Below the pieces are notes generated by a model. It worked only from the letters and a program-made list of their open reading frames with translations. It did not search any database and had not been told where the DNA came from. The position numbers and the translations under genes are program-made. From assembly GCA_965202585.1 (NCBI GenBank), contig OZ241831.1, positions 41,168,001-41,232,000 on the forward strand: DNA of 64,000 nucleotides, read 5' to 3'. The DNA is from Thalia democratica. Its lineage: Eukaryota. Every line of letters begins with the position of its first letter. The stretch's first letter is position 1. Below, in pieces: positions 324-63,920 of the stretch.

Positions 324-1181
324 CTGAAATATAAAATTTGGTTTACATGAATTTTAAAGCTTAATTTTCTAACAAAAAAAATAACAGTTGTTTAACATTA
401 TTCTGTATTTTTATTAACTTTCTCTGTATCATAACTAGTTTTTTTTTACCAATTTTAAAAGAAGTCAATGTTTATACTAAAGCTCATGTTAATTTCTTAT
501 TTTTGAAGTTTGTTATGTTACAAGATGTAAATTTATTTTAAATATGTGTAAAAAATATGTTTTTTACAACAAACAAAATTGTGATTTTTAAACTTTCAGT
601 ACTTGGAATTTTCAAATTTATTAAATACATGAAACCAAAACTTTACACAAATATATTTCTTTATACAATAATCCTAAAAGTGTAATTAAATTTACGTGTA
701 TGTATTGTTTTCACATACTTGTTTGTTTAAACTGAGCTTTTAACTTATAGCTAAACTGTTAAATAAACACACGTTTTAAAATGGCTGCTATCGATTAGTG
801 AGAATATAGTATTATCCAAAACTAGAATTAAAATGATTATTATTAAGATCAAACTTACTTGTTGATATTCGATTGAGGATTTTGCACTGCATTTTTTAAT
901 TGAAATGGTTGTTGAAGTAAAAACATTTCATTTTCTAAGAAAGATTTGTAAACTTTACTAAATTTAGTGGTTTACAAAACAAAAAGTAGGATTTTTTAAC
1001 AATAACTAAGAAAAATTTCATAAAACGTGTTCAAAATTACTTAAAAAAAATGTTTATGCTTGTTAAAAACACTGTCAGATGTTTTTACAAAATTTTTGCA
1101 GAACTATTTTTAACTATTTTAGTTCTATTTGTTTGCCTTTATAAACTGACACTTAACTTCATTACTCACTTAGGTTTACAT
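116..1181 (-). CDS. MECOM-like: Copy A (partial; 3' part lies before base 1) of EVI1/MECOM-PRDM16-like C2H2 zinc-finger gene: exons 1170-1181, 859-934, 116-323
   Basis: Three exons with AG/GT boundaries in consistent phase translate to ..[98 protein letters not shown]. Functional status unknown. Confidence 0.8.
859..934 (-). CDS. Copy A exon 3 (76 nt)
   Basis: ttcttag|...|gtaagt; one codon shorter than the 79-nt exon in B/C/D with the same phases; open frame; contains an in-frame ATG at 924-926. Confidence 0.8.
1170..1181 (-). CDS. Copy A exon 2: 12-nt microexon ATGTAAACCTAA
   Basis: ttacaag|12 nt|gtgagt; same length, phase and flanking intron conservation as B, C and D. Confidence 0.7.
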
Positions 1182-1403: not shown

Positions 1404-1513
1404 CTATCTTGTAACAAAACTTCGCTTTATTTTTGTTTGTTTTAAAAAAAAAAAAATTATTGTTGCAATAAAGTGTTGTTGTTGTTATGAATTTTATTAC
1501 ACTAAGCTTTCAT
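1404..1513 (-). pseudogene. Decayed remnant of copy A first coding exon
   Basis: Aligns loosely to copy C exon 1 (AAAATG start, AACACTTTAT, ACAAACAAA, ends CAAG), but reads ATG AAA GCT TAG, contains a poly-T insertion, and the donor reads AT instead of GT. Confidence 0.5.
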
Positions 1514-13045: not shown

Positions 13046-14734
13046 ATAAATTTTAAGATTTTTGTTAAAAAACTTAAGGTTAAGTTTTTTAACTGTGAAT
13101 GTTTTAAATATTTTTGTCATTAGTAAAAAAAACTTGTAGTAGTTATACATAGTTCTTTTTATAAGTTTAAAGTTTTAATTATCAACAAAGTTTTCAAATA
13201 CGTTGTTCAAAAAACTTTATTCTGTACAAAGTTTCCATGTAAAGTAATTTTGAATAAAAAAAACGTATAGATAATATAGAAAATTTATATAACGTTTATT
13301 GTTATCTATTAAGTGAAAGTTTTTCAAGTAAAAGAAATCTCCTTTATTAAATATAACTCAGTAGACATGCTTTTAGTAAGGAGATCAAAAACGAATTGAA
13401 AGATTACACCTTATAAACAGACATTTACATTCTTTAAAAGTATTGTTAAGATAATACCGAGTTTTGCAGAAAATACCATTTTATGTTTTGTTCAACTTAC
13501 AGTAAAATTAAACTGTTTGCTTTATTAAAGGTAAAAAAGGTTTTTTTTCATATAATTCTAACTTATTTTTTAAGTTCAAAATGGCTTAACTAATGTTGTT
13601 TTATTTTGAGAACATGCTAAACGTTAATATTTGTTTAGTATCAATTATGATAATTGTTATTTCTTGTTACAAAGTTTATATTGCTTTAGACTATCGCGAG
13701 TTTTTGTTTTTTGATAACAGTATAAATTAAAAAAAAAATCAAAACAACAAAATAAAAAATTATTGTATTTTGTCAAAATTGGCTAAAAAAATGTTATTTA
13801 ATTTATCAAATAAATACATGAACATATTTAAAAAACTTTCATAATGTTTGTTTGAATAAAGTTAATTTTAAATACTAAAAGCTTGTTAGAAAGAAATTAT
13901 ATGAAATTATTAAAACAGTTATATTGTAAGATAAAAAGTTTAATGCTTTAATAAACTGTTATAGTTTATAAGTTAACTCTAGTTTTATAAAAGTTCATAA
14001 AAATCGTAGTGTATTTAAAATGTTTTAAATTATTTTTTGTGAGATTTAAATATAAGTTAAATACAGTTGTGATAAAACAATTAAGCTAAATAACAAAAAT
14101 TCTTATTACAATGTCAAAATATTAAAACAAGCTAAAGGAAAAACAGTACAAAAACTGTATTGCAAGAAAATAAAAATCAAAATTCAAACCAAACTATGAC
14201 ACATGTATAAATAGTTATTGCAATAATACGATTAGTATGTACTTAAGTATTCAATTAATTACTTAATAAAAATATATTTTAAGTATGTTTCAAACGTTTT
14301 TATTTATTTACATCTTATAATGTTAAAAAAACTTTACTGTAAATAACTTGCAAACAAAGGTCGTTTGTAAATAACGAGCGAAGTCATACTTTTACAATAA
14401 AAATTGCAACTACAATATGTTGTAGTAAAATTTTTATATATTAAATTTTAAATGGCTTATTGCCTTTTGTATTTAAATTTAAAGTATAGTGTATAAGATA
14501 TAACAAGATATAACAAAATACATATTAAAATTGAGCAAATAAGCTTGATAATAATAAAGTATAAGTTTATATATAATAAAATCATTGACATTGAAAGTTT
14601 AAAAAAAAAAGTTAAAAAACACACATAAACTAGTTGATACTTTTCATTAAACGACAAAATTAAAAATATCTGACCCATAGCTAATATTTTTGAAACATAT
14701 TTGTATACTTCAGAAATATTTATAGCATATAAAG

Positions 14735-14848
14735 TTAGTAATGACAGAATTTTTGATTCTGGTAACATTCGTGCTTCTTCAAATGTCGTTCTAAATTTGC
14801 CGCTTGTCCAAATGACCTACCGCATATATCACATGTAAAAGGTCTTTC
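14735..14848 (-). CDS. Copy B exon 7: ZF10 and stop
   Basis: ttttcag|GAAAGACCT; [27 protein letters not shown] matches the last EVI1 finger. Confidence 0.92.
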
Positions 14849-17800
14849 CTGAAAAGTATTGTAACTTTTTATAGTGTAGTAAGTATAATTATTTATGTTT
14901 TAAATTTGTATGGTTTACTATTTAAACAGGTTAAAAAATAATTAAAACTGTTTTTTGGTTTTCTAAAGTATTTTTTATAAGAAAAATAAAGTATTTTTTC
15001 AACGAGTCTTAACAAGTAATTAATAGCTTATAGTTTAGACTAGTTTATAGAAAGGGCCTTTTCAGAGAAATTAGGTTATTGGTTCTGAGACATATAAGTT
15101 TAGCCTTTATAATACCTTGTTTTGTTACAATATTTACTTGTTTTATACACTAACCTTTTTGTGAATATTTCTGATATGGCGTTGCAAATTAGAGGAAATT
15201 GAGAAACTACGATTGCACAATTTACATTTGTAAGGTTGTTCCCCCGTGTGAGTCCTCAAATGTCTTGTCAAGTTTGCACTTCGGGGAAAAAACTTTCCAC
15301 AAAACTTGCATTTATACTTTTCTTTGCTGCTTTGCTGCGTTACTAAACGGTTCTTATTGGTGTTATTTGGAAAGTAATGCTTAAAATTTGCATAAGGATG
15401 AGAAATAACTCGGTTTTTAACCTTATTGTGTTTCTTTGTTTTAAATTGCTTTTGACTGTCCAAAAAATTTGGTTCTGAATCATTAGCGTCTGAGGACACT
15501 AAATTTTCAGATGACTGGTTCAGGGCACTTGCATTTGAGCTGTAAGAACCTGGGTCAGAAATCGGTGGAGAAAATAAAAATCTTTGTTGCTCAGTTGATT
15601 TTATTAAACTGTCTGTTGTATTGTTAAGTTTGTATCCAGATGAACTTGCATTTTCAAGCAATTTTGAATTATTCATTTTATCAAATCTTTTAAACCCTTT
15701 AAGTTGGTTTTCACTCAAGCTTTTGTTGTTAAATTGAGATTGAAAACTATTTTGTCCTTTCACTGTGTCCATGTTAGTTTGAATATTTTTAAGTATTTGA
15801 CTGTACATATGAGGATACAAAGTAGCCATGTATTGAGCTAGAAGCAACTGGTATTTGTATAAAGACATTGAGTGTTGTAGACTTTTATTTTGATAAGACA
15901 GAAAAAAAGGATAGTTTTTATTATATTGGTTGAAAGAAGCTGGATTCTGATACAACGAATTTGCACAAGGGTTTAAGCTAGATGAGTTATTCGAAGTATT
16001 ATAATTGTTTTTCAAGTTTAAATTTTGATAATTGTTTTTAAAACCACACTTAAGGGTATTTAAGCTAAAAAATTTGCTTCGAATATGGTTTTTTGGTAGA
16101 TTTTCATAAATTTCTGGTTGGTTCTTCTTAAAATGCGATGAATTATGATTACCAGTTGTTTTAACAGTATAAAAGTCAGTTTGAACAGACTTATCTAGTT
16201 GGTATATATTTTGAACAACTATTGTTAGAGACTGTTCAAAACTTTTTGAATTTGCTTTTAAAATATAGGGATAACTAGAGGATGTATTTGGAAAACCAAT
16301 ATGCAGTTCTTTAACAGAAAAAGCTGAATCAGAAGAATTGTTACATTGTACTTGAGCATGAGCCATTGTTTTCTTACTTTTTTGTAACTTATTAGCACTT
16401 GTCTGTTGAGTTTCAATTGATGCTGAATCAAATGGAGAAACATTTGTTTGAAAAGGGAGTTGAAAAAAGTTGTGATTATTTTCATGTTGAACGAAGGAAG
16501 GTAAATGTGACGCCAGAAGTGGAAAATATGCTGATGTATTTTGTTTGAAGAAATCTAGAAAATAACAAACATGTACTTTTAGAAAAAAAATACATTGTAA
16601 TTATCATATGTTTTAATATAATAAGCTTTATTATCGACTTAAAAGATAAGAATACTTTTTTAGTAAACAATATATATTTGTTCGATTAAACAAGTATCGT
16701 TGATTTATGCGTGATGTTACCATGAGTTTAATTTGACTTATAAAACAGTTGTATATATTTAAAAAAACTTGCAACTTGAAACTTTTTTTTTTCTTCAACA
16801 TTTTGTTAAGTTTAAAGCTTTTTTAATCTTATCTCTAATTCTTTTAAAAACATAAATGAAATGTTAATTAGTTTCGAATATTGATATAAAATTTTAAAAC
16901 TAATTATGATGTCGTTTTACTAAGCTATAAAAAATATGATATTTAACCGAAAATTAATAACGCTTCTTTTCACTTTAAAAATGAGTTAGAGATAAAATTA
17001 AAATAGCTTAAAGTTTACAAGTTTTAGAAAATCAAAAGTATATTGTTGTTCATTTGCAAATCGTACTTTGATATAAAAAAATTCTTTCGACCATAGAATT
17101 AATAATAAGAGTTGTATATATAAATGTAATTTTATTTTCTGTTGAAATTTTTTTATACTATGACTTGATTTAATGTACTGTAAAAGTTAACGAAAGAAAA
17201 TTTTCAAGATAAATTTAGTTAATTAATGAATCATGTAATAAGTTTTGTAATATTTTCACAAAACTCGAATTTAATTAGCAGAAAAACATAGTTTAAGCGT
17301 AATACAAAAGAAAAATAGCGATGTTCAAACAAAAAGATAGCAAACAATATTGTTTTATCTGTTTCTGTAGAAGCCTTTATTTTATCACTTATCACTGTGA
17401 ATTAGCATTTTTAGTTTCTTGATTTGGGGAGTGCTTTGATGAAACAAAAATAATTTATGTTACTGATAAAAACTTAAATCTTATCATCGGCACTGACTGC
17501 CGGTATTTAGTAGAGCAGTTTTTGCTGCATAACTTAAAGATAAAAACTGTTTTGCTACTTTGAAGTATAAGCTTTACGATTTAGTTTTTAACAACCTATT
17601 ATATTACAAATAGTAGACAAATAATTGACAAAGTAACTTTTTATTCGTAATACTTTTAAGCTCTATAGTTAAATTTAGTTGTTTGAAACTAAATGTATAA
17701 AACTTAATTAAACTAACTGTTTTGTAGCAATTGTCCAAACTTATTTTTATTAGTTTTTTCACAAAATCTGCGATGTTTCGCCAATGAACTTGAGTTTGAA

Positions 17801-20531
17801 AATATTTGATTGCAATCAACACATTTTGTTTGAGTTCTGCATTTTACATGCATTCGTTTGTGACGACATAGATTGCTAAACTGTTTAGAAAAGAAAATTT
17901 CATTATTATAAAATACTATAAACTAGCATACTTGTATGCTATTTTTATGTACATTTGTTGTTATTTTAAAACTCTTTCGTTAGTAGACTAAAGTTATGTT
18001 ACTATTCGTTACAAAAAACTGCTTTACTAAAAGTTTAAAAATAAAATGCTTAGTAGCTTTAAACATAATATTATAAAGTTATTGTTTACTTAATATTTTT
18101 AAAAACTTATAATTTAAAATTTTGAAAAAATAGCTGTTTTGATTTTTAAAGTTTTTTTTTTCATGCTTTTTATTATTGTTATGTGAATACTGTTATTGCT
18201 TAACAAAAATGCTATCAAAGCAAAATTATTTGATGACTTCAAACAAATTTTGGTAGCCCTTTCACTTGATATTTACTTTGTATCGTTTTCTTTACAGAGA
18301 ATACAAAGCTATGCTAAAACTTGAAGGTAAGCAGTTTTTTTTTGATTACTTTGCATTTAATGTCTCATTTAAGTATTAAGTTAAAAAATCAACTTTAAGA
18401 TAAAATTTTCTATACTGAAACTAAACAAATGAAATTAATATTTCCAAATCTTTTTAGAATATAAAAAAATATCAAAACTTTAGTAATTTTTATTGTTAAT
18501 TGAAACAACTTTATCAAATCAATTTAAACAATTAAAAATTTTTAGTCATTTTTTATTTTCTGAAACTTAAAATTGATATAAATTTTTAGCGACTCAAAAG
18601 TTTTTAATTCTGTGTTTTTACTTGTAAGAGCAAAAATAAAAACAGCTTTACAAAATTTATGATCAAGCTTTAGATACGTATTACATGGTTATAAATCCTA
18701 TGTTTTATGTATTCCAAATATAAGTAACAGTATACCATGATAAAATTAAAAGTTATTTTTTTTAAATGTTTGTAAACTTAACACATATTTTTTTGTTCTA
18801 AAGCAATAAAGTTTATGTTTAAAATGTATAAGTTTATAAAATTTTCCAGAGTTTAATGTTAGATTTTTTTTTCTTGTAGCAATTTCTTATGACGACATAC
18901 CTGTGTATATGACTTGTGACAAACTTCACAGGTGAACGGTTTCACGCTGCTGTGCATGTGCTGATATTGTTTCAAACCGCTCGAAGTTGCAAATGTCTTT
19001 CCACACTCCGGACACGCGTGAGATCTCGCTCCGATGTGACGCTCCCGGATGTGTTTCTGAAGAGATGACGAATCGGTGAATGTCGAATCACAATGCTCGC
19101 ATTTAAACCTAAAATATAAAACCTTAGTTTTGTAGGTGTTTTATAAGCTTCATAGTACAATACAAAAAATAATTGTCAGTTAGACTTTTTTTATTTGAGT
19201 TTTTCAACATTACTTATAATGTTATAACTGTGATTCAATATTTATATGACCATCAAAACAAAACAACTTACAAATTGCATTTTGTATATTTGTTAGTAAT
19301 TCATCACATGTTTTAAAACTTTAAAAAACATTTATAGTTTTAGATTTTTTTTTGATTTCAAGGTCTATAGATTATAATGTTTAGGTTAAAGTGTTAATCT
19401 AAAGCTCTAATAAACATTTATTTCAATTTTTATTAATTAAACTTTTTTTAGTTAAAAGGAATAAATTTGTAAAAGTTATAAAAGTACTGTTTCGTAATAA
19501 AATGTTTAATTATTGTTAATAGTAAAAAAAATGACTGTAGCGTACTTAGATAAAATTAATAAATTATATTATGAAATCTTCTATTTGATGTTAAAAAAAT
19601 TTGTTGTTGTAAAATAAAACAGCTCTTTCACTATGAGTTTAACAAAAATTTACTTATGCGAAATAGTTTTAGTAGTGTAAACATTAAGAATTATAAACTA
19701 CTATATGATTACATGTACTTTTAAAATGGCTGAATTCGATAAGTAAACACATATCAGTAGCATATACTTATCATATTTCTCCATATAAGTTTGTAAAACA
19801 AAGTATAATATTGTTTCCTTATTCAAAACTATTAGCATACTTACTCGTTTAAAGTATTTAGATGGAAATTGGGTACAGCAGTTTTTGGTTGAAATGTATA
19901 TTGAAGTGAAATAGTTTCTTTTTCTAAAATATTTGTTGTTGGTAAATAGTAAACTTTAGTTTTTCAAAACCAATAACAAGCAAATTTATAAAAACTGCTG
20001 TCGATTTTCAAAAAGCTTTAGATTGTTTTTAATCTTTAGATCACTTTTTTACCTTTAGATTATTGCAAAATAAGCAACTAAGACATCTTGAACATAACGT
20101 AATTTTAACTACTTATTTATTAAAGTTTTTTGGTTTGATTACCTTATTAAACTGACACTTAATGTCATTACTTACGTAGGTTAGTATCTAGTGATCAAAT
20201 ATACCAGTTGTTATGACAACGTAAATAACCTATCAAAAGATCAATTGCGCAATCAAAGTGTTATTGGTAATTTATCAACAAAAAATTAGTCAAAATATTT
20301 GTCACTCATAGTATCTAACTTTTTTTCTTACAAATTATTTTAAACTATCTAACATTTGTAGAAAATCGTAATCTTTGTCTTCCTTGTATTAGTTAATGTT
20401 TTTAAATACTTGAATTAATGAACTTAACTACCTTGTTTTTGAATTTTAACTTCTTGTTTATTAGTTCCATAAGGTATTTGATATTTTTGCATATTTTGCC
20501 AAGGAGCAACTTCTGCATATTTTGCTTCCAT
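14735..20531 (-). CDS. MECOM-like: Copy B: 7-exon PR-less EVI1/MECOM-PRDM16/Hamlet-like zinc-finger transcription factor, 691 aa; ZF5 zinc-ligand His replaced by Tyr
   Basis: Exons 20432-20531, 20176-20187, 19845-19923, 18901-19108, 17718-17880, 15155-16554 and 14735-14848 sum to 2076 nt with all phases compatible and GT-AG introns. Starts [17 protein letters not shown], ends [37 protein letters not shown]. Confidence 0.9.
15155..16554 (-). CDS. Copy B exon 6 (1400 nt): N/S/Q/K-rich spacer plus ZF8-9
   Basis: Includes ORF 15143-16366, and the frame stays open up to acceptor ttctag at 16555; donor AAG|gttagt; [10 protein letters not shown] and SISSNLQRH helices. Confidence 0.93.
17316..17560. 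promoter_or_regulatory. Conserved non-coding element X in intron 5 of copy B
   Basis: Aligns to 33884-34110 and 60877-61125; invariant core ACTGCCGGTATTTAGTA; clustered TTATC (GATAA) motifs. Confidence 0.65.
17718..17880 (-). CDS. Copy B exon 5 (163 nt): end of ZF6 and C2HC ZF7
   Basis: aaacag|[45 protein letters not shown]|gttagt. Confidence 0.93.
18208..18335. other. Conserved non-coding element Y in intron 4 of copy B
   Basis: Aligns to 34708-34835 and 61756-61885 (GTAGCC(C/T)TTTCACTTGATATTTACTTT ... AGAGAATACAAAGCT), while the rest of the intron is diverged. Confidence 0.65.
18901..19108 (-). CDS. Copy B exon 4 (208 nt): ZF4-6
   Basis: ttttag|..CAG|gtatgt; 4 nt differences from copy A, including LKQH->LKQY and HIH->HMH. 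Confidence 0.95.
19845..19923 (-). CDS. Copy B exon 3 (79 nt)
   Basis: ttttag|..|gtaagt; [26 protein letters not shown], open and in phase. Confidence 0.82.
20176..20187 (-). CDS. Copy B exon 2: 12-nt microexon ATACTAACCTAC
   Basis: tcactag|12 nt|gtaagt; adds DTNL in frame. Confidence 0.72.
20432..20531 (-). CDS. Copy B exon 1 coding part
   Basis: [33 protein letters not shown]; donor CAAG|gtagtt; in-frame TAA 14 codons upstream; strongly conserved with copy D. Confidence 0.78.
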
Positions 20532-34835: not shown

Positions 34836-35295
34836 TTTATTTGCTTGCTTTGCGTTTAGGTCTTATTATTTTTACTTTAGTTCAATTTACCTTAAAACAG
34901 CTTATCAGCTACTTGATTTATTTAAAACAATTTATTTTATTTATTTTTAATGTATGAGATATAACAAAACTATTATAGAGTAAAAAGTAAAAAGTTTAAA
35001 ATAATTAATAAATTTTATAATGTGTGTAAAAACAAATAGTTTGAAAAAAAGTATTTTTTATTCCTTAAACTTAAACTTTTTTAAATATTAAAATAGTTCT
35101 AGACTTTTAAAGTTTCTAGATGGGGTTTTTAATATAGCTTGGTTTTTAGTTTAATTCAAAGTTTTTAATTCGATAATATTTATTACATAGTTGTTCAATG
35201 GTATATACAAACTACATTGCAGGTACATTCAAAACTACTTATTTGAAATTTGAGAGATTTTTTATTAAATCTAACAGCATATTATGACGTCATAC

Positions 35296-35503
35296 CTGTG
35301 TATATGATTTGTGACAAACTTCACAGGTGAACGGTTTCACGCTGCTGTGAATGTGCTGATGTTGTTTCAAACCGCTCGAAGTTGCAAATGTCTTTCCACA
35401 CTCCGGACACGCGTGAGATCTCGCTCCGATGTGACGCTCCCGGATGTGTTTCTGAAGAGATGACGAATCAGTGAATGTCGAATTACAATGCTCGCATTTG
35501 AAC
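35296..35503 (-). pseudogene. Copy C exon 4 (ZF4-6), sequence intact
   Basis: Only 2 nt differ from copy A; AAG acceptor; donor gtatga. Confidence 0.93.
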
Positions 35504-37084
35504 CTTAATTTGTAAATTTTATGTTAGTTAAAACATTTATTTTGAAATGTTTTTACTAACCATTGTATGATAACATTCGTACTAGTTTACTCTGAGATTT
35601 TTTTTAATTAAAGCATTAAAGTATTTAAAACAAACTATATTTTAAATCTATTTAATTTCATATAACTTAATTCTTTTGAAATAGTTTACCGCTGACGGGG
35701 GAACTTCATTAAATATAAGGAACAATTTAATATGTTCATATGTTAATTTTAAAAAGCTTTATTTTAAAACTTTACAAAATTTGATAAGTACTTTCCTAAA
35801 TTTAACTCGTACAAGCAAATATTAAAACCGACCAAAATAACCAATCTCAAAGTTTCAAATTTTTATAATTATTGGATTTTTTAAGCCTAATTAAAACTAC
35901 GTCACGATACGATAGTTGAGTTTTTTTAAACAGTAAAAGCAGTAATTAATTATAATGTGTTAGTTGCAAGAGTTTTTTTTTTTTGTTTACAAACTTTACA
36001 AGCCTGCTGATTGTATGTTTGTTTGTTAGAGCTTTAAAAGTTATGATAACATTAAGTAGTTTACAATGTTTTAACATAAACATTAACTAACTTAGTAATA
36101 TTATATTTTTCTTAAATTAATAGTTTTAAACTATAAGTTTTATTTTGTTTGTTTTTTACACATAAATGTATTTAAAGTCTAGTCTAATATCTTTTTGCAT
36201 ACTAACATAAAATTTATACAGATGTTATTCAACTGATGATCGGGTTTTATTTGATTCAAACGAGTGAAATACTGTTTTATTATCAAAATATAAAAATTTC
36301 GATTTAATCATTATCATTATCCTCATTATCAAATAATTTTATTGTGATCTATTAAGTAAAAAGCACACAATTAAATATAGTTACAAAATAGTATATAAAA
36401 TAATATCAGTTTAAAAGTTTTTTTGCTGTTTATTTCTTACTTGTGTTCATTAAAAAACCATAAAACTTGTTTAAATTTAGTTATAAATTTAATAACAACA
36501 AACGACAAAGACTATACTCGAACTAAATTGTTTTGAAATAAATTAGTTAATTGTTACAAGTTTTAATTTTTTTAGATTTTCGACGATCGTAGCACAATTT
36601 TATGTTGTTACAAAGAAAAAGATTTGAATATGTTTCTTAATATACTCGAGCTGAAATATTAATAATTTATAGGTTTAATTTTAACTCATAAACTTTTAAA
36701 TGTTTTTGAAAAAGAGTAGAAAACGTATATTTTTATTAAGAATTCTATATTTGAATGGTTTGGTACAGTTTTTCATAAACTAAGTTTTAAGATTTTTTTT
36801 TAGTTTTAGTTACTGCCGTAAAAAATATTGAATAAAGTTTAGAAAAGGAGAATAAACTTAATTTAAACATTTTTTTTTGTAATCTTTTATGTTTTTTAAT
36901 TAAAAGAAGTATTTGTACACCACAAATTTAAATAATTTTTTTTAAAGATTTTGTTTGTGCATTTTTGATAATTTATTTCATAAAAATGGCTGCATTCAAT
37001 TAGTTTATAAGTAGTATGAAAATGTCAATCATTTTCTATTTTTAGTTATATTAGATGTAATAGAACATTATCTTTATTACGTAC

Positions 37085-37163
37085 TTGCTTTGAACATTCG
37101 TTTTAGGATTCGATACAAAAGATTTTGGTTGAAATGGATTTTGAAGTAAAATTCTTTCACAAT
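37085..37163 (-). pseudogene. Copy C exon 3 (79 nt)
   Basis: tttttag|CERILLQNPFQPKSFVSNPKTNVQSK|gtacgt, open. Confidence 0.8.
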
Positions 37164-37329: not shown

Positions 37330-37341
37330 GTAATTGCTTAT
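37330..37341 (-). pseudogene. Copy C exon 2: 12-nt microexon ATAAGCAATTAC
   Basis: atcattag|12 nt|gtaagt. Confidence 0.7.
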
Positions 37342-37630: not shown

Positions 37631-37724
37631 CTTGTTCTACGATTTTACTTCTTTGTTTGTCAATTCCATAAAGTGTTTCATACTTTTGTTGATAATTCCC
37701 ACGACTTGCAAATTCATTCTCCAT
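37631..37724 (-). pseudogene. Copy C exon 1 coding part
   Basis: AAAATGG start; MENEFASRGNYQQKYETLYGIDKQRSKIVEQ; donor CAAG|gttgat in phase 1. Confidence 0.68.
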
Positions 37725-52200: not shown

Positions 52201-52968
52201 GTTCGTAATTTTTTTTAGTCTTACTGAAGTTTCTAAACTATATTTTCTTGTACACAAATTTATCACGTTTTTAAGGAAAAAATAAAATGTTTTTTAAAAG
52301 AGATTATAAACTATTTTTTCTATAACTAGTATAACTATATTTCATAAAAAAATATAATATTTCACATGTTACTTCAAAAATATTCTTCAAAATAGTTTTG
52401 AAATTGTATCTAAAGAGTAACACAATTACACAAAATTTCACAAGTGTATATTATTATTTTAAATAAGTACTAAAATAGTTTTTATAACTAAAGGTCTTTA
52501 AAAATACTAAAAAACAGTAAAGTGAAATATATAATATGTTGTTAAAAGCAAATTGAAAATACAAATTATACACAAAAGTAACAAGTTGTTGTTTTATTCA
52601 CAAAGAAAATTTAAAACAAAAAATATGTTCACAAAAATTAACAAAATTTTTCAAACACTTTAAGTTCATAATCTAAGGAACATTGTTTTTCAAAAGTATT
52701 AAGAAAAGTTTTAAAAATAAATTAAAACGTAGAACGTTTAATTTCAAAAAAAAAAGAAACTATAAGCACCTTGTTCAAATCGATATTAAATAGTTAAAAG
52801 TGCTTCGATTACTTAATGTACAAAGGTGTATTAAACTTACTTTAAAATTAAACTTGCTTTTATTTGAAATTATTAAAAGTTTTCAAATTTAAAAAAATAT
52901 GAAAACTCTAAAAGTAATAAAATAGGTTTCATAAAATACACATTGACAAATAAGTAAACTCACCATAT

Positions 52969-58567: not shown

Positions 58568-63920
<5,353 letters not shown>

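Follow-up and report, generated by a model that had tools for sequence, protein, structure and literature searches.

In the pelagic tunicate Thalia democratica, a cluster of zinc-finger genes related to MECOM/EVI1 carries a 12-nucleotide (nt) unit bounded by AG and GTRAGT. The unit was studied in a 64,000-nt stretch of the genome, referred to below as the window (GenBank assembly GCA_965202585.1, contig OZ241831.1, positions 41,168,001 to 41,232,000), which has a guanine-plus-cytosine (GC) content of 23.5% and contains four copies of the host gene, A to D, on the minus strand. All four copies have the unit, and in copies B to D it lies between two phase-1 exons. It is probably a real microexon (exon 2) of a PR-less EVI1/MECOM-like family, recognised across two short introns with the help of an optimal donor and conserved flanks, and the probability of this reading is put at roughly 0.6. 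Its inclusion in mRNA, and the mechanism by which it would be recognised, are both proposed from the genomic sequence.

Position, splice signals and reading frame of the unit

The gene copies fall into three subfamilies: eight copies, B and D among them, are termed type I, five copies, among them C, type II, and three copies, among them A, type III. In copy B, the candidate microexon occupies positions 20176-20187 (ag/ATACTAACCTAC/gtaagt) and reads (G)AT ACT AAC CTA C, or DTNL. Copy D has ag/ATACAAACCTAC/gtaagt at 63582-63593, which also gives DTNL in phase 1, and copy C has ag/ATAAGCAATTAC/gtaagt at 37330-37341, which gives DKQL in the same phase. In copy A, the unit is ag/ATGTAAACCTAA/gtgagt at 1170-1181; phase 1 gives DVNL, a meaningless reading, since exon 1 is dead in this copy and the unit is non-coding there. 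An earlier sequence-only reading of the window had reported these four segments, their strong GT(A/G)AGT donors and these four peptides, and all of them were recovered, as were the plus-strand flank motifs AAACTGACA and ATGACAA in each of the four copies. Its description of the unit as a phase 1-1 exon holds for copies B, C and D, in which both the exon-1 donor and the exon-3 acceptor were located, but not for copy A, whose upstream exon is dead and has lost its donor. Likewise, the proposal that the microexon is retained in all four paralogues is right as far as the presence of the unit goes, but copy A cannot use it as coding sequence and copy C looks decayed.

Coding exon 1 lies at 20432-20531 in copy B (MEAKY...KQ plus G, donor AAG/GTAGTT), at 63821-63920 in copy D (donor AAG/GTAACT) and at 37631-37724 in copy C (MENEFASRGNYQQKYETLYGIDKQRSKIVEQ plus G, donor AAG/GTTGAT), all on the minus strand and all ending in phase 1. 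Exon 3, which is 79 nt long in each, lies at 19845-19923, 63279-63357 and 37085-37163, respectively; in copy B, it has the phase-1 acceptor ttttag/AA and a GTAAGT donor. This arrangement is common to all type I and type II copies, in which exon 1 ends in AAG/GT in phase 1 and the 79-nt exon 3 starts in phase 1. The frame is open in types I and II whether the unit is included or skipped, so the direct joining of exon 1 to exon 3 that had been suggested is possible in copies B, C and D. The introns on either side are short. Copy B has an intron 1 of 244 nt and an intron 2 of 252 nt, and the ranges are 199-289 nt and 156-252 nt in the type I and II copies of the cluster. With the external lineages described below included, they are 198-302 nt for intron 1 and about 126-252 nt for intron 2 where measured.

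The donor of the unit, GTAAGTA, is much nearer to the consensus than the exon-1 donors (GTAGTT, GTAACT, GTTAAT). In copy B, this donor and the conserved 45-nt intron flank downstream (20131-20175, minus strand; GTAAGTAATGACATTAAGTGTCAGTTTAATAAGGTAATCAAAC) form the best-conserved stretch of the 5′ gene region, both within and between species. On the other side lie the acceptor (cacTAG) and a conserved upstream flank of 70 nt (20188-20257, minus strand). The latter contains TTGTCATAA at about −30, which by position alone is where a branch point would sit. Further elements near the unit are TGTCATAA upstream and the cores ATGACA and TGTCAG downstream. About 65 nt upstream of the unit, at 20240-20252, the genome, of only 23% GC, has a perfect 10-bp palindrome, ATTGCGCAAT (C/EBP-like by eye), which is kept at the same position in type I copies and on three marine-metagenome contigs (L037, L039, L043).

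The unit is 12 nt long in every copy that has it, whether in the cluster or outside it. Within it, synonymous changes are seen (ACT/ACA, AAC/AAT, CTA/TTA, AAG/AAA), the middle positions vary, and none of 20 copies has an in-frame stop. A longer exon ending at the next GT (AAG/GTAATC) was rejected, since the sequence reads into an in-frame TAA. The features of a recursive splice site, or ratchet point, are absent as well: AG and GT stand 12 nt apart, and the joint intron would measure only about 0.3-0.6 kb.

The bare pattern AG-N12-GTRAGT occurs 12 times in the window compared to 3.25 expected; four of these are the candidate sites and eight are unrelated. Because the pattern is common, the case for a microexon rests on position and conservation rather than on the pattern itself. 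The regions 3′ of copies B and D have another AG-N12-GTAAGT string in common (AGTTTAATTTTA..GTAAGT; minus strand, 13495-13514 and 52835-52854), which lies within conserved non-coding modules.

Conservation of the unit and its flanks

Apart from a block around the unit (about −70 to +45), in which identity is 81-85%, the introns of different subfamilies cannot be aligned. Changes within this block were counted by the Fitch method on a tree of 20 copies, with eight splice columns (AG and GTRAGT) chosen a priori. These eight columns changed once over the 20 copies, by an A>G at +3 that stays within the donor consensus, compared to 1.6 changes per flank column (permutation p=0.0007). Over the same copies, GTAAGT is the sole ungapped hexamer window with at most one change.

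Mean pairwise differences within types and between species place the unit in the context of the whole 5′ region. The 12-nt unit differs by 6-7% within types and 7-20% between species, and the downstream flank (+1 to +45) by 5-10% and 7-18%. For the upstream flank (−70 to −1) the values are 7-11% and 31-33%. Exon 1 differs by 13-17% within types and 20% between species, exon 3 by 8-17% and 25-28%, and the remaining intron by 14-36% and 39-62%. The unit and some 45 nt downstream of it are thus more conserved than coding exons 1 and 3, both within and between species. Gene conversion among paralogues was considered as the sole cause of the similarity but rejected, given that contigs from other lineages also show the conserved block and that the pattern holds between species.

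The unit in other lineages

A profile of twelve exon-1 peptides, searched against 1.84 billion proteins, matched seven short open reading frames (ORFs) that read through the exon end, on ENA/Tara marine-metagenome contigs of 20-25% GC. Close relatives of the family were found only on Tara Oceans and other marine-metagenome contigs, a distribution that marks the host as pelagic. Every contig that reaches far enough downstream has the unit, and these contigs represent four lineages (L034, L037/38, L039 and L043-45). The three type I-like lineages, L037/38, L039 and L043-45, have AG/ATACAAACCTAC/GTAAGT, and the type II-like lineage L034 has AG/ATAAAAAACTAC/GTAAGT, which reads DKKL. The conserved downstream flank follows the unit in all four. 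A phase-1 exon-1 donor (CAG/GT or AAG/GT) is present on three of the four contigs, none being found on L037, and phase-1 exon-3 acceptors were located in L039 and L034. Overall, the AG and GTRAGT boundaries are present in all cluster copies with a 5′ end (16/16) and in every external lineage (4/4).

Proposed recognition of the unit

In types I and II, inclusion of the unit would add the four residues D-[T/K]-[N/Q/K]-L to the protein, between an exon 1 of 31-33 codons and the 79-nt exon 3, with all three joined in phase 1. Since the flanking introns are short (about 126-302 nt), splice sites would be paired across the introns, as in intron definition, and the size limits that apply under exon definition would not hold for such an exon. 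The donor of the unit would be an optimal match to U1 (GTAAGTA), far stronger than exon-1 donors such as GTAGTT and GTTAAT. The 70 nt or so upstream, and especially the 45 nt or so downstream, appear to be under purifying selection and may comprise the branch-point region and intronic splicing enhancers. The unit would be recognised with none of the eMIC/SRRM4 cis code.

No conserved RNA structure was found. The block has no Rfam match at E<=1, the single-sequence fold of copy B is not significant (z = −1.7), and the alignment fold contains three trivial pairs with no covariation. Pairing of TGACA with TGTCA, either as a hairpin after the donor or as a loop-out of the exon, was rejected as unsupported, as the arms mutate without compensating change and do not covary.

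Comparison with known classes of microexon

Exons that depend on the eMIC domain share a cis code comprising a UGC near the acceptor, a long AG-free zone and a UCUC-rich tract (bioRxiv 10.1101/2021.02.24.432780). None of the 20 copies has a TGC within 30 nt upstream of the unit, in agreement with the sequence-only reading, and the nearest TGC is 44-109 nt away or absent. TGCATG is absent from the 200 nt downstream in every copy. Upstream, the first AG lies at a distance of 14-15 nt in types II and III and 41-42 nt in most type I copies; in copy L005 this distance is 5 nt, and on the external contigs it is 14-79 nt. Pyrimidines make up 41-65% of positions −20 to −3 in the 20 copies, and no UCUC run before the acceptor is visible by eye in the aligned flanks. 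The eMIC cis signature is absent around the unit, and the unit itself would appear to be eMIC-independent. A six-frame search of the genome with Pfam SRRM_C (PF15230) gave no match at E<=0.1, a weak negative, as no control genome gave a match either and introns could hide the domain.

The unit resembles the neural microexons of bilaterians governed by eMIC (SRRM3/SRRM4) in that its length falls within their 3-27 nt, it preserves the frame, and its intron flanks are conserved above the usual level. It differs from them in having no near UGC, no UCUC tract and, in most type II, type III and external copies, only a short AG-free stretch; moreover, its host gene is a transcription factor and not a synaptic or cytoskeletal gene. 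With the constitutive, intron-defined microexons of insects, fungi and plants it shares two short introns, a near-perfect donor and a fixed position and length. However, 45-70 nt of conserved intron on each side is unusual for a constitutive exon, and flanks that outdo the neighbouring coding exons in conservation are more typical of regulated ones.

The unit could be a regulated cassette microexon governed by an undescribed intronic code, in a chordate lineage with no detectable eMIC domain. The code would consist of the downstream element of about 45 nt, with its paired TGACA/TGTCA cores, and the TGTCA upstream, and would be retained among salp-like species with better conservation than that of the coding exons. 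This is a tentative and rather doubtful extension of the microexon reading.

The sequence-only reading had attached greater interest to the unit in the event of a non-bilaterian host. The host is instead a pelagic tunicate, and therefore a bilaterian chordate. The best named matches to its mitochondrial HSP70 are tunicate proteins, from Clavelina and Phallusia (87%), Ciona (85-86%) and Botryllus and Styela (84%), compared to about 81% for insects; further, unnamed matches at 90-97% occur in JGI, ENA and Logan records. A search for glycosyl hydrolase 6 returned no match and carries no weight for the assignment. The mitochondrial HSP70 gene (L049, C8:34073137-34074717) is an uninterrupted frame of 561 codons, 97% identical to a JGI/ENA protein, and is a useful marker in plankton data.

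Evidence against inclusion and a regulatory-DNA alternative

Several observations weigh against the microexon reading. The three sequencing runs that contain the locus (X1-X3) consist of DNA contigs in which the introns are evenly covered, and no RNA run containing it was found. The exon-1 profile found only unspliced genomic ORFs among the 1.84 billion proteins. The sole relative returned when protein libraries were searched with the large exon was P0005, which is a genomic ORF from a Tara contig, and no spliced form was found. A pattern for the inclusion junction gave three unrelated chance matches in JGI metagenomes, and searches for retrocopies in the organism's own genome were empty or at control level. 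The polypyrimidine tract is weak (about 50% pyrimidine), and the acceptor in type III is AAG. Finally, the N-terminal exons are near-neutral at the protein level, with a ratio of nonsynonymous to synonymous substitution rates (dN/dS) of 0.65 in exon 1 and 1.08 in exon 3. Selection acts on the nucleotides, and strong selection for the four added residues is not obvious.

The other adverse points suit a different explanation. The block of about 115 nt may be a conserved intronic cis-regulatory DNA element, such as an enhancer or a promoter-proximal element, with incidental splice-like edges, TACGTAAGT in a bZIP-like site, and exon 1 joined directly to exon 3. This is unlikely, although it deserves the most weight among the alternatives. 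Motifs of a DNA-binding type occur in the flanks. Type I copies and other species have the perfect ATTGCGCAAT palindrome, TGACA/TGTCA cores occur three times in a span of about 60 nt, and TACGTAA is present as well, but these matches were made only by eye. The block is conserved above the neighbouring coding exons, which encode a near-neutral N-terminal peptide. Other conserved non-exonic blocks exist at the locus, at 17332-17760 and 18182-18369 on the minus strand (introns 4 and 5); they are 76-79% identical between types I and II over 190-570 nt and lie outside the coding model. Direct joining of exon 1 to exon 3 keeps the frame, and AG-N12-GTRAGT alone is common. Moreover, across the split between L010 and L011, which followed the death of exon 1 in type III, the block differs by 13% compared to 26-66% in the surrounding introns, and this conservation fits a role independent of exon 1.

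A DNA element does not easily account for the arrangement of the block. The splice columns are its least changed positions, and the single A>G at +3 keeps the donor but breaks the ACGT core of a bZIP site. The length of 12 nt is fixed while the upstream flank takes insertions and deletions; in L005, 7 nt have been inserted in such a way that TAG again borders the exon. That length is a multiple of three, its phase fits both neighbours, and stops in frame are lacking throughout. In the intact type III genes, the block is no longer conserved, which would be odd for a needed enhancer. Compared to conserved non-coding elements in the introns of developmental regulators, the block is similar in being under purifying selection, in having motif-like palindromes and in having similar blocks nearby, but it is unlike them in being centred on a phased, stop-free splice unit whose AG and GTRAGT vary least.

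Type III genes and a donor-only alternative

In the type III subfamily, exon 1 is dead, reading MEA or MKA followed by a stop and containing several stops in all. In place of its donor GT, the two intact copies have AC or AT, and the third copy shares the lesions. The exon-1 relic of copy A (1408-1513, minus strand) has four in-frame stops after MKA, and its former donor GT is now AT (1406-1407). With exon 1 dead, the unit cannot be coding in type III. Nevertheless, two type III genes have an intact large exon of 465 residues and an in-frame ATG in exon 3. In copy A, this exon is 76 nt long (859-934, minus strand), and its ATG is the likely type III start codon. An ATG at the start of the type III unit was considered for this role and rejected, because in L010 its frame does not match that of exon 4 and in copy A it runs at once into TAA.

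Between the two intact type III genes, the block differs at 19/127 positions (15%), compared to a neutral value of 12.5%. Divergence at a neutral rate would fit the lapse of a role tied to exon-1 transcripts. This is set against the comparison across the older L010-L011 split given above. Spliced-leader (SL) trans-splicing is known in tunicates, and trans-splicing of an SL to the acceptor of the unit would reconcile the two patterns. Just upstream of type III exon 3, a stretch of about 160 nt (935-1112 in copy A; L010:1609-1767) differs by only 5.7% compared to the neutral value of about 12.5%, and may be a new promoter or 5′ untranslated region gained after the death of exon 1.

These genes also lend some colour to a quite improbable explanation, in which only the donor of the unit acts in cis with its neighbours. 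On this view, the block would serve as a 5′ exon, either alternative or replacement, begun by a transcription start or an SL trans-splice acceptor, with GTAAGT spliced to exon 3 and AG not serving as a cis acceptor for exon 1. Type III has lost the ORF and donor of exon 1, yet its genes stay intact with the exon-3 acceptor and in-frame ATG kept, and in the stretch that was aligned no conserved donor other than the GTRAGT of the block was found before exon 3. Between species, constraint centres on this donor and the next 45 nt, the upstream flank being far less conserved (31-33% difference), and a TATA-like CATAAAAG lies by eye about 30 nt before the type II unit. However, exon 1 is intact in types I and II, where its conserved phase-1 donor needs an acceptor, and type I exon 3 has no ATG, so that a transcript started in the block would have no nearby start codon. 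A start site would need neither the AG, which is invariant in 20 gene copies, nor the fixed 12-nt spacing. In type III, moreover, the conserved region is the 160 nt before exon 3 and not the block.

The idea that the unit is a chance splice-like string in neutral intron, common to recent duplicates only, is effectively refuted: such strings are expected about three times per 64 kb, eight unrelated ones do occur in the window, and B and D share about 78% identity along their whole length, but chance would not leave the block 81-85% identical between subfamilies with unalignable introns, or still conserved in other lineages, on contigs where the introns show 39-62% difference.

The host genes and their cluster

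Gene models were built from an ORF listing, three-frame translation and Pfam. Downstream of exon 3, copy B has on its minus strand a finger exon at 18887-19113 that is near-identical in all copies, a second finger exon at about 17887, a large low-complexity exon at 15146-16600 with two fingers at its end followed by a GTAAGT donor, and a last finger exon at about 14738-14899. Pfam zf-C2H2 matches fall in exons 4 and 5 and in the large and last exons. Among named proteins, MECOM/EVI1, PRDM16 and hamlet match best, and identity reaches 88% in the C-terminal fingers. The PR domain (PF21549) has 49 matches in the genome and none within C7:40.86-41.30 Mb, where the cluster lies.

The host genes are EVI1-like genes with no PR domain, no fingers 1-3 and a private N-terminus. 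As in MECOM/EVI1, PRDM16 and Drosophila Hamlet, there is a four-finger block, which, judged by the translations, matches EVI1 fingers 4-7, and a C-terminal finger pair, with a third C-terminal finger on the last exon. Unlike these relatives, the salp genes lack the PR domain and fingers 1-3, in which they resemble the PR-less EVI1 isoform; their N-terminus (exons 1-3) is novel and fast-evolving, and they occur as a tandem array of 17 copies that belong to three subfamilies and include several decayed ones. For the first zinc-finger exon (18887-19113, 102-336, 35282-35508 and 62402-62617, minus strand), DNA identity of copy B to copies A and C is 96-97%, and protein identity over the 17 cluster copies is 90-96%, while the rest of the genes differ by 20-50%. 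This similarity suggests gene conversion or extreme constraint.

A whole-genome search with the unit and its flanks found 17 places. The region C7:40.86-41.30 Mb accounts for sixteen of these, arranged as two oppositely oriented blocks, and the last is a relic that stands alone at C7:53.065 Mb. In the C7 cluster, of which the window is a part, 17 copies of the conserved finger exon are present, and 16 of the 17 have the unit; the remaining copy (C7:41.148 Mb, L019) has no exons 1-3. The relic (L016, C7:53063790-53066844) consists of a type III 5′ region with the unit and flank, its acceptor AG is now AA, and it has no family exons within 10 kb on the gene side.

At least five cluster copies have stops or frame breaks. 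The copy at 41.251 Mb on C7 is decayed, with stops in both exon 1 and the large exon; the latter is also interrupted by stops in the copies at C7:40.904 Mb and C7:40.987 Mb. In the copy at C7:41.065 Mb, the large exon is in two blocks, which may reflect a frameshift. In copy C, the frame of the large exon is broken, and a zinc-finger cysteine has become phenylalanine (Cys>Phe). In the type II copy L009 (C7:41.277 Mb), intron 3 has a GC-rich insertion of CCGGATCCGG-like repeats about 290-460 nt past the unit, which stretches the distance from unit to finger exon to about 3.7 kb.

Implications

The 12-nt unit is a well-supported candidate microexon in an unannotated genome, and it is no surprise for the splicing field. 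If confirmed by RNA, it would be a clean 12-nt exon with no SRRM4/eMIC signature, maintained across a 16-copy family and several lineages of pelagic tunicates by intron flanks better conserved than the adjacent coding sequence. Should the doubtful cassette reading prove true, it would mean a second, independent route to switch-like control of microexons, one that toggles four N-terminal residues of an expanded EVI1-like family. The family would also offer a natural mutagenesis panel, in which the intact units of types I and II, the decaying block of type III, the relic with no AG and the copy with a 7-nt insertion at its acceptor may reveal which flank elements so small an exon needs.

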